From: Auanema rhodensis
Taxonomy: Eukaryota > Animalia > Nematoda
Length of the DNA: 64,000 nucleotides
Reading direction: 5' to 3'
Assembly: GCA_964057225.1 (NCBI GenBank)
Contig: OZ059898.1
Location: 12,214,001-12,278,000 of the forward strand
Shown: positions 11,632 through 15,461 of the stretch, piece after piece
Layout of the letters: every line of letters starts with the position of its first letter
Position numbering within the stretch: the stretch's first letter is position 1
Translations under genes and position numbers: made by a program
The notes under the pieces: model-generated
Databases searched by the model: none
What the model was told of the DNA's origin: nothing
Seen by the model: only the letters and a program-made list of their open reading frames with translations

Positions 11632-14467
11632 ATGTTTGATTCTTCAGATAACTCAGTTGTTTCACCAACAGTATGTTTCTATATTTGTCTGGATTAAATA
11701 TCTTGTTTAGGTATTAAAACTTAGGGAAGAGTTATCGGCAATAACATGCTCTACTGCAGCAGAGTTTTTCGCCGGTGTGAGAGAAGTAAAAATGTCGATC
11801 CTATTGTTATAAACATGAATTCATAATTTAGATAGCTAGGAACTATGATCAACGCTTTGCAGTTATTGAGACTGAATTAGCTATAGTTCAACAAACGCTT
11901 CCGGAGAAGCTGAAAGAATTAAAAGAGTATTTGTTTTAATTGCTTATTCCTCTAACTGATATTTATAGAGCAAAAGAAGAATTGCTCGATTTAAAAAACC
12001 AAATAGTAACGCTTCGAGATGGTTATGTGAGTGAAGCGAAAACTATTTTGGAATCATTAAAAAAGGTTTTATTTCTTGGCCACGCCATAGATTTAGCAAA
12101 ATATTTAGAATGTCCCTTTTGCTGTGGAGAAAATGGAAAGTATTGCACAGAAGAAGGAACAGCTTAGAAAGTATGTAATCCACTTTTACAAGAAAAACTT
12201 TGATTTTCAGACTGGAATGCTTGGAGCAAGGAAACTTGCTTTTATCTCAATGCGAAAAGGCAGTAGAATTAAAAAATTTATCTGACACTCAAAAGTTTTT
12301 TGCTGCTCTATTGGATCAGTATAAATTAGTCATGGAAGTTCGTAAAACATCGTTTACCGTAATGTACTTAGTATTTAAGTTTGGAGGTGAATCTTTGACA
12401 GAAACGTTTGAAGAATCATTCCATTCTATATGTTCGGAAGTCAAAAATTACGCTGATAATGGGATAACTTCAGTGTTAACCAAGTTAGGTTTTCCATTTG
12501 ATGATTCTCTAGGTATTTCATTTTTCGATATCTTATTCCTCATTTGTAAACATAGATTATAATGTTATGAAATCGGATATATCAACGCTTATAAGCTACA
12601 TTGTTCTATTATATCAATCTTATGACTGCAAAGCTGAAGGCTCGGGGTAATTTTATTAGTGCATGTGTTTTTTAAAGCTCTTTTTTCAGCATTGAAGCCA
12701 TCTATTCTGCAATTTTTGACCCTATTCGGAAAAGATTTTTATATTTTTTCTATGGAGATAGAAAAACTAATGATATTAGTAAACCTCAGTGGTATACTTT
12801 TTCTATAATGCTAAGCTTATGTTATGTTTAACTCAGGTACTTTTCACTAGTCTTATCTTGGTTCCAAACTTCGTTACCCTTCTTTGAACTTGTTATTTCT
12901 GGAGTTGCTGAGTATTTGGTTAGCATTATTCAATTTTTTGTTCTAATTTTTTGTCATAATTTCAGCGCATTAATCTAGAGCCTGCTATATACTTTCATCG
13001 TTCTTTATCCGACTTGATTATAGAAAAAACAGAATCTTTGTTGGACAATGAGGACATCTTGCAAAAAACCTTTTTATTTTCTCATTTAGTCGACGAATGC
13101 ATATCATACGAAGAACATAAATCTCGTAAGCTTATTTTTGTAATGTTATAATCCTATATTTTCTCAAGAAATCGATCTTTGCCAGTTTGGAAAGAGCGTT
13201 TTGGATTTACTTTGTCGTCATGATATACTTCTGATTTGGCTGACTGTATGCTTTTCCTTTCTTTCAGTTTTACTTGGTAATTTATTTTTAAGATTGAGAA
13301 AGATTGTTGCATAACCAAAATAGATGATATGCTAGCAAACCCAAATAGATGGCAAAATAGGTATGCTTTATTAGAAGATGCGGATCAGGTAATGATGATT
13401 ATATACATATGAAAGTTAATGATTAATGTTTAGTACTGCGTTTGTGAATGTGCTGAAGCATTCGTTTCTCTCATTCAGGGTCTCCAACAAAGATCTAGGC
13501 TGTTAACTGACGAAAATGCTCAGCGACAATTTGTAGATTTACAACTTATTCTAGTCGACGATTTCCGTCAGCGTTTAGTCCAAATAGCAAGTCAAGCAGA
13601 ATCACCATGGACAGAGCCTTATCCCCAAGTAATGAATGCTATTTGGTTTGACCTTCTCTAGGTTTTGATCACGAAACTCATCTGTTATAGGTATTTGCAT
13701 GACGTTGTTGAGGAATGGAATGAAACATTTGTTTTAGCTGGAATTCATCCATTGGGTAATCGAAAACCCGTGTTTCAGATTAGTAAACAGTTCTATGAGT
13801 GAGTATATCAAATAATCGGCTATGATCTGATTTTCTGTTTTAGGCACGTATGGGCTCAAATGGCGGACGATGTGGTAACATCCCTGAATGTTCAATGCAA
13901 AGGTTTGATTACTGATTATCAACAACAGAGATGGTAATGGTCTTCATTATGATTGTAAGCCAGCATTTCATACTTTTAGGAGCTCTATGGATAGCAAGGC
14001 TTTGAGTGTGGAAAGAGATATATCTGCTGCTTTTTGTCCCTTACTAATGAAGATCAGAACTTCCTTCTCCAATGTTGGCAATCACTATTCTAGAGTTGGT
14101 TTTAAATTACCATTCCGGTCATAAATATATGTCTATAGGTCTCGGTTGCAAAGTTATTCATGAAAATGACTTCTGTGGTTGGTCAATTGTTATTAGATGT
14201 TGTTCAAGGAACCTCTTATAAGTTGGTATAATCGCGTGATTCAAATAAATTTTCATTTTCAGTGCGGAAGGTGGTGCTCAGATGCTACATGACATTGAGA
14301 AAGGACTTTTACCTGCTTTGAATTTTATATTTTCCAGATGTGGGGTGACCAACTTTAGAGCCGAACATGATAAGGTATGGTGCTAAAAGTTTGTTGAATC
14401 TATTTCTTAAAATTTATTTCAGCATTTTATTCAATTGATTGGCTCACTATCCCCGCAAACATCCTAA
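11632..14467 (+). CDS. RINT1: RINT1/TIP20 ER tethering (NRZ complex) protein
   Basis: PIRKRFLYFFYGDRKTNDISKPQWY, FSHLVDECISYE, QFVDLQLILVDDFRQRL, YNAEGGAQMLHD match RINT1 motifs. The 3' end is uncertain and looks short. Confidence 0.88.
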
Positions 14468-14697
14468 CAAAGTCCATGTGTTATGCTATTCATAATTTTA
14501 GTTAATAACTAGAGCGGGATTTTATATAATTTATTCATTAAAAATGTATTTTACGGGTTAGTAAATGGTTTTACGATGAAGGATTAAATTTAAAACTGTT
14601 TTTGTTGTTCCTTAAATAAGTTGAAGAGTTTCATCATATAATACTGATTCTAGGAATCACTTTAACAAACTTATATTATAACTTATATTCTATCAGA

Positions 14698-15461
14698 ATG
14701 CATCAAGATAGTATAGAAGTTATCCCAATTATTATTGGTCACACCAATCTGCCTAGAGCTACAGGATCTGTGAGTTTTGAAGTGAATTTTGAATTATTCT
14801 TTTCTCTCAGGTAACTTTAGTCCGTACCCAAGGCTTTACCTTATTAGTTGACTGTGGAGATCCATGGAATGGGGAAGAATTACGTGAAAAATTAATTGCT
14901 GCTGGCACAGCATCAAATCAGATAAGTATTTGATGAAACTAAAGTTTTTTCTCATTGTTGAAGTGTATATTATTAATTTCTTTTCACATTACTCATGTTG
15001 TAATTACACATGGCCACATCGATCATTGCGGCAATGTGAATATGTTTCCTCAAGCAGCTTTTTTTATGGCTCGTGATATCGCCAGTAATCAAACATATTC
15101 TGAACTAAAAGAAGTATGTTTACATTGAGCGATAGTTTTATAACTACTATCTTAAGAATAAAAAGATATTGTTCCCTGATGTGGAACTTCATGTGTTTAG
15201 TGGTCATACAGATTGCGATCTAGTTATTCTAGTCAAGAACACGAAATATGGAACAGTGGCTATCACTGGTATTAACAAACTTTGCAACATTTAGTGTAGA
15301 TATAACTTTTAGGTGATATTTTCGAGAATGAGCACGACGAAGAGAGCTATGTAGAATTTTCACAGTACCCAGAACGTCAAGCTGTTAGTAGAATGTTAAT
15401 TAAGCAAGTTGCTGATTTTATTGTACCAGGACACGGTCCTATTTTTTCCGTCAGAAAATAA
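14698..15461 (+). CDS. MBLAC1: Metallo-beta-lactamase domain protein 1-like
   Basis: LLVDCGDPW, ITHVVITHGHIDHCGN (HxHxDH), GHT, TGDIFENEHD, ADFIVPGHG. Best model needs an AT-AC intron at 14922-14987. Confidence 0.88.

Follow-up and report, generated by a model that had tools for sequence, protein, structure and literature searches.

Is the second intron of a small gene of the nematode Auanema rhodensis, which begins with AT and ends with AC, spliced out at exactly these termini and, if so, by which machinery? The gene lies in the window analysed here, a stretch of 64,000 nucleotides of contig OZ059898.1, where it was read from the sequence and the list of open reading frames as five exons on the + strand (14698–15461) separated by short introns of nematode type. 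The initial annotation had proposed a rare natural U2-type AT-AC intron, and a collinear join of the flanking exons, the pairing of the donor with U1 snRNA, the TTTTCA signal and the lack of U12 motifs support this proposal. Hence, with a probability of about 0.8, intron 2 of what appears to be a functional single-copy MBLAC1-like gene is an AT-AC intron that the major (U2-dependent) spliceosome removes through the join 14921^14988; both the splicing itself and the machinery are what we infer from the sequence.

The window is A+T-rich (∼32–35% G+C), and apart from intron 2 the architecture of the gene is conventional, all features being on the + strand. Exon 1 (14698..14769), taken from the list of open reading frames and its translation, comprises 24 codons (MHQDSIEVIPIIIGHTNLPRATGS), ends in phase 0 and aligns weakly with the N-termini of orthologues. 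It is followed by the canonical intron 1 (14770..14810; 41 nt, GTGAGT...CTCTCAG) and by exon 2 (14811..14921; 37 codons, VTLVRTQGFTLLVDCGDPWNGEELREKLIAAGTASNQ), which ends with ...GCA TCA AAT CAG and could be aligned with orthologue residues 26–53 and similar ranges. Intron 2 (14922..14987) is 66 nt long with AT...AC termini, 79% A+T, phase 0 and in-frame stops; its 5' splice site (14919..14929) reads cag|ATAAGTAT, and its 3' splice site (14976..14987) reads ATTTCTTTTCAC|att. Exon 3 (14988..15113; 42 codons, ITHVVITHGHIDHCGNVNMFPQ...) starts with ATT ACT CAT GTT, translated as ITHVVITHGHIDH, and carries the HxHxDH metal-binding motif. The two remaining introns, intron 3 (15114..15156; 43 nt, GTATGT...TCTTAAG) and intron 4 (15269..15312; 44 nt, GTATTA...CTTTTAG), are again canonical; they flank exon 4 (15157..15268; 37 codons plus 1 base, ...FSGHTDCDLVILV..., phase 1 end), and the gene closes with exon 5 (15313..15461; G-DIFENEHDEE...VPGHGPIFSVRK, stop TAA).

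Database searches conducted exon by exon point to the metallo-beta-lactamase fold. Exon 3 matches the Pfam family Lactamase_B (E=7.5e-7) at profile positions 44–67, starting from the first residue of the exon, and its top PDB match, likewise from residue 1, is human MBLAC1 (4v0h, residues 107–137; 4.6e-5). The sole PDB match of exon 5 is the same structure (4v0h, residues 192–237; E=3.6e-7), while exons 1, 2 and 4, taken singly, yielded no significant PDB or Pfam match, being too short to score. The metal-ligand motifs appear in the expected order, that is, HGHIDH in exon 3, GHTD in exon 4 and GDIFE together with PGHG in exon 5; the predicted product is an MBLAC1-like protein of the metallo-beta-lactamase fold, with MBLAC1 as its closest relative among characterised proteins. 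All five exons are open, so that ∼190 codons remain open in DNA with 68% A+T, and every motif checked is intact. A search of the genome for a paralogue or retrocopy exhibiting the spliced junction found none; the gene is single copy, and its lesion-free state is thus not covered by any paralogue.

Orthologues were collected with a library-wide phmmer search using exon 3, followed by a word search with the best match, and were found in Auanema sp. JU1783, which has the nearest protein, as well as in Ancylostoma, Necator, Cylicocyclus, Elaeophora, Ascaris, Diploscapter and Dracunculus. No protein or transcript product of the species itself was among the results of the word search with the JU1783 orthologue, and one with the 61-residue open frame around exon 3 likewise yielded no candidate.

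The next question is whether the AT-AC join is forced by the coding sequence. On re-reading, the coordinates and letters of 14922–14987 (66 nt, ATAAGT at the start and TTTTCAC at the end) proved exact, with AT at 14922–23 and AC at 14986–87, and the stretch holds TGA TGA as well as TAA in the frame of exon 2, so that the in-frame stop noted earlier stands. The claim that GT-AG solutions fail also holds, since none of the GT-AG pairs that can be formed near the gap is both in frame and free of stops. What can be found are stop-free in-frame GC-AG pairs that connect 14898, 14901 or 14910 to 14963, and one AT-AG pair from 14922 to 14963. All of these depend on the poor acceptor ATTGTTGAAG and would add eight residues, CILLISFH; the pair 14910–14963, which the initial annotation had rightly called weak, would in addition cost four residues. 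The next AG after 14963 lies past the HxHxDH motif.

Spacing within the protein discriminates among these joins. In 19 of 21 homologues, D.G.PW and HGH.DH lie 25 residues apart, and the join 14921^14988 alone yields this value (18+7=25), whereas the alternatives yield 29–33. The Pfam profile leads to the same result: exon 2 residues 1–28 correspond to Lactamase_B positions 8–34 and exon 3 begins at position 44, and the nine residues of exon 2 that are left over fill nine profile positions under the join 14921^14988. Moreover, when each exon was aligned locally with the ten full-length orthologues, exon 3 began at the residue next to the one at which exon 2 ended in every case (10/10); these orthologues comprise those of Ancylostoma, Cylicocyclus, Elaeophora, Ascaris, Diploscapter and Dracunculus plus four more. 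The join 14921^14988 is therefore the only one that is collinear with Lactamase_B, human MBLAC1 and the ten nematode and invertebrate orthologues, and it is from this exact protein collinearity that we infer the use of the junction in the mRNA. The dinucleotide AT occurs both at 14922–14923 and at 14988–14989, which leaves the register ambiguous by 2 nt, as AT..AC, TA..CA and AA..AT registers would give an identical mRNA; of these, AT..AC alone represents a known splice class and alone aligns the ATAAGT and TTTTCAC motifs.

The signals at both ends of the intron are those of the major spliceosome. Two of the genome's own U1 genes begin with AAACTTACCTGG, and the U1 5' end is AAACUUACCUG, to which the sequence cag|ATAAGTAT is complementary at positions −3 to −1, +2 to +6 and +8, with mismatches only at +1 (A) and +7. 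Within −3 to +6, the donor cag|AUAAGUAU thus deviates from U1 solely at +1, and it exhibits A at +4, G at +5 and T at +6. Under the criterion for U2-type 5' splice sites in PMC1557818, it conforms to the consensus apart from +1, pairs with U1 and shows the expected G at +5; A at +4, G at +5 and U at +6 have been stressed as features of known U2-type AT-AC introns (PMC2831892). The acceptor, ATTTCTTTTCAC|att, is the nematode UUUUCAG signal with its last G replaced by C and thus has a 3' region of U2 type (the nematode consensus being TTTTCAGR; PMC1557818). The initial description of U2 consensus sites in which both terminal Gs are changed accordingly agrees with the U1 complementarity and with the TTTTCA signal.

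U12 signals, on the other hand, are lacking at both positions at which they would be expected. The donor ATAAGTAT differs from ATATCCTT at four of eight positions and lacks the TCC core, which confirms the earlier statement that the U12 donor ATATCC is absent; the branch-site motif TCCTTAAC is likewise absent 10–15 nt from the 3' end, the best match being TTATTAAT, which agrees at five of eight positions, has no CC and lies in sequence with 79% A+T. The genome (180.9 Mb in 112 contigs) was also searched for the components of the minor spliceosome. No match was obtained for U11, U12, U4atac or U6atac (RF00548, RF00007, RF00618, RF00619) among the ∼40–50 first-look candidates scored out of thousands, whereas the same search gave 47 matches to U2 and 42 to U1 among the candidates scored; given this sampling, and given that the built-in controls were prokaryotic, the minor snRNA negatives are weak. 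PDCD7 had no match in the own-genome search either. These results are in line with reports that nematodes other than Trichinella have lost the minor spliceosome and that rhabditids lack U12 splicing (PMC2846911; PMC10639083).

The same search showed that the major snRNA genes form arrays, with intact U2 genes in tandem at a spacing of ∼2.1–2.5 kb (C1:10958341-11283156) and U1 genes in tandem with a period of 727 bp (C3:15862280-16077301). They fit a description of Auanema rhodense in which snRNA arrays are restricted to the germline and which reports a 180-Mb PacBio HiFi germline genome with U2 and tRNA arrays (10.64898/2026.08.27.747507).

A plausible course of splicing can be sketched for intron 2. 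U1 snRNA would recognise the donor cag|AUAAGUAU by pairing from −3 to +6 except at +1, and the U-rich UUUUCA tract would draw nematode U2AF despite the final C in place of G. Both catalytic steps would then go ahead with A as the first and C as the last base, because A...C makes a non-Watson-Crick pair between the intron ends of the kind that G...G usually makes. In the spliced product, ...ASNQ would be joined to ITHVVITHGHIDH..., and the active-site motif would be restored. It is established that the major spliceosome accepts A...C in place of G...G at the intron ends, as suppression experiments in yeast and mammals reportedly showed, and the dependence of U2-type AT-AC introns on the major snRNAs was reportedly demonstrated by Wu and Krainer (1997) and by Dietrich et al. 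(1997).

Intron 2 of MBLAC1 is no isolated case, as the genome contains at least three more AT-AC introns of the same build. Re-reading of the respective loci identified (i) an intron of 40 nt in cdk-2 (aag|ATAAGT...TTTTTCAC|ag, phase 0), with the downstream exon matching Pkinase (8.9e-19), (ii) an intron of 66 nt in a HORMA paralogue (aag|ATAAGT...ATTTCAC|ag), and (iii) an intron of 45 nt in a second HORMA paralogue (cag|ATAAAT...TTTTTAC|gt). The introns of cdk-2 and of the meiotic HORMA genes resemble that of MBLAC1 in having an ATAAGT or ATAAAT donor and in being short (40–66 nt) and A+T-rich, although they reside in different genes; in all four, the donor is preceded by ag| and the T-rich 3' end closes with (C/T)AC.

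Counting motifs across the genome proved far less informative. The strict motif AGATAAGT-N24-54-TTTTCAC has 15 matches genome-wide, two of which are the MBLAC1 and cdk-2 introns, versus 30 for the reversed control; a census of the kind proposed by the initial annotation recovers both introns but exhibits no enrichment, so that the motif alone proves nothing, and the case for intron 2 rests on exact protein collinearity rather than on chance motif counts. A further complication is that ATAAGT itself contains GT at +5/+6, so that real ATAA|GT donors produce false AT-start candidates in such a census. A look-alike of the form ATAAGT...TTTTCAG is seen at 14218–14262 of the window, in the upstream gene. 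Screens based on open reading frames in the flanks were rejected as non-discriminating, as many pairs other than G...G pass by chance near real introns. For this reason, the intron at C3:10652627-10652683 (+; ag|ATAAGTTC...TTTTTTCAC, 57 nt, phase 1), which is flanked by 56 and 65 open codons, ranks only as a candidate; a Pfam search returned no family. AT-AC introns would then number on the order of a handful in the Auanema genome, which is comparable with the 0.003–0.008% in mouse, fly and human and differs from the zero in C. elegans (PMC1557818).

When placed among the known intron classes, the predicted MBLAC1 intron 2 is a further case of the already known but rare U2-type AT-AC class. 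U2-type (type II) AT-AC introns are known from genes of vertebrates and Drosophila such as those for voltage-gated sodium channels, and are very rare, accounting for 15 of the ∼185,000 introns in human and for 3 in Drosophila (PMC1557818; PMC2831892); the 2005 set of C. elegans introns contained none among 94,072 (Sheth et al. 2006, PMC1557818). Like its vertebrate and Drosophila counterparts, the Auanema intron has AT and AC termini, A at +4, G at +5 and an otherwise U2-type donor, and is devoid of U12 motifs. Unlike them, it has, within its 66 nt, a short UUUUCA site for U2AF instead of a long polypyrimidine tract, and its host belongs to a lineage without a detectable minor spliceosome, its splicing being predicted here from sequence. 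With U12-type AT-AC introns it shares the AT and AC termini, but neither an ATATCC donor nor a TCCTTAAC branch site, and minor snRNAs were undetected among the candidates scored. A parallel is provided by the minor and minor-like introns reported to be spliced in C. elegans in spite of the lack of minor snRNAs, for which the major spliceosome has been suggested (Olthof et al. 2024, PMC11347168). In both cases, introns with unusual ends are found in a nematode without detectable minor snRNAs; the C. elegans introns were, however, chosen for U12-like motifs, whereas the Auanema intron is U2-like and non-standard only at its two terminal bases.

Three other explanations of the locus have to be weighed against splicing of an AT-AC intron by the major spliceosome. 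The one that we consider improbable, rather than very improbable, is that the junction is not used, either because the gene is a young pseudogene with destroyed intron-2 splice sites or because the GC-AG pair 14910–14963 or the AT-AG pair 14922–14963 is used instead. That splicing at 14921^14988 is a sequence-based prediction leaves room for this explanation, as does the existence, on paper, of three in-frame, stop-free options with AG acceptors. Such pairs would nonetheless combine the poor acceptor ATTGTTGAAG with non-consensus donors, and would insert CILLISFH at a point where a motif spacing of 25 residues, and not 29–33, is conserved. Decay of the gene, in turn, would not be expected to have hit just the two terminal Gs of the intron, turning the first into A and the last into C and sparing everything else, with ∼190 codons remaining open and all motifs intact, nor would it account for the recurrence of the same A...C pairing in cdk-2, an essential gene.

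The intron might also be of U12 type, or a divergent minor-like AT-AC intron, with a minor spliceosome that the searches missed. AT-AC termini are indeed typical of a U12 subtype, the A of TTATTAAT is located 11 nt from the 3' end, where a U12 branch site would be expected, the negative snRNA searches carry little weight, and very divergent nematode minor snRNAs have been raised as a possibility (PMC11347168). Yet the donor is a near-perfect U1 site that lacks the TCC core and mismatches ATATCCTT at four of eight positions, and the branch-like match of 5/8, without CC, lies in sequence of 79% A+T. U11, U12, U4atac, U6atac and PDCD7 went undetected in the search that detected U1 and U2, and rhabditid nematodes are reported to be without U12 splicing (PMC2846911; PMC10639083); we hence regard a U12-type intron as very improbable. 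Least probable of all appears to be an error of assembly or base calling that conceals a true GT-AG intron. It is the assembled sequence that was read here, but an error would have to consist of two independent substitutions that fall exactly on the first and the last base of the intron and create the one compensatory pair. In addition, the same A...C pair was re-read at three or more other loci, and the assembly size and the U2 arrays fit the PacBio HiFi germline assembly (10.64898/2026.08.27.747507). Splicing of an AT-AC intron by the major spliceosome remains the preferred reading.

On the origin of such introns we can but speculate. Auanema might repeatedly have turned GT-AG into AT-AC introns (MBLAC1, cdk-2, two HORMA genes and perhaps C3:10652627-10652683), which would imply either that the checking of terminal bases by the major spliceosome or U2AF35 is relaxed in this lineage or that slow-splicing introns serve a regulatory use. 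Alternatively, the MBLAC1 intron might be the fossil of an ancestral U12-type AT-AC intron that became trapped once nematodes had lost their minor spliceosome, a pathway that has been proposed (PMC2831892). We consider these scenarios rather unlikely.

If spliced as proposed, intron 2 is a clean addition to the small set of AT-AC introns handled by the major spliceosome in an animal lineage that has no detectable minor one. It and the other cases in the genome would offer natural substrates for studying how strictly nematode U2AF and the second catalytic step require the terminal G, and also how a paired change of G to A and G to C becomes fixed. There is a practical consequence as well, as gene finders that allow only GT-AG and GC-AG introns would truncate or split the MBLAC1-like gene. 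The models of Auanema sp. JU1783 (144 residues) and Necator americanus (163 residues) lack the N-terminal 50–60 residues of other orthologues, and these truncations may reflect mis-annotation near the position of the intron. The N-terminally truncated JU1783 model begins 14 residues ahead of the junction and continues across it (...NCEE-VTHVV...), and the JU1783 gene may have a canonical intron, no intron or an RNA-hinted AT-AC intron at this point.

The MBLAC1-like architecture of ∼195 residues has many homologues in metagenomes. A metagenome scan with exon 5 identified 62 loci, all of them intronless, mostly G+C-rich and prokaryote-like, with the matches of all exons in one frame; these many homologues from soil and sediment metagenomes share 40–59% identity with exon 5, and the protein search also gave MBLAC1-like members from Patescibacteria and Methanomassiliicoccaceae. 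Being intronless and prokaryote-like throughout, the metagenome homologues were set aside as uninformative for intron 2. At the 5' end of the Auanema gene, finally, a putative SL trans-splice acceptor (TTCTATCAG; 14688..14696, + strand) that fits the TTTTCAG consensus is located 1 nt 5' of the ATG, and in view of this resemblance to an SL acceptor the gene may be trans-spliced or belong to an operon with the + strand gene that ends upstream.
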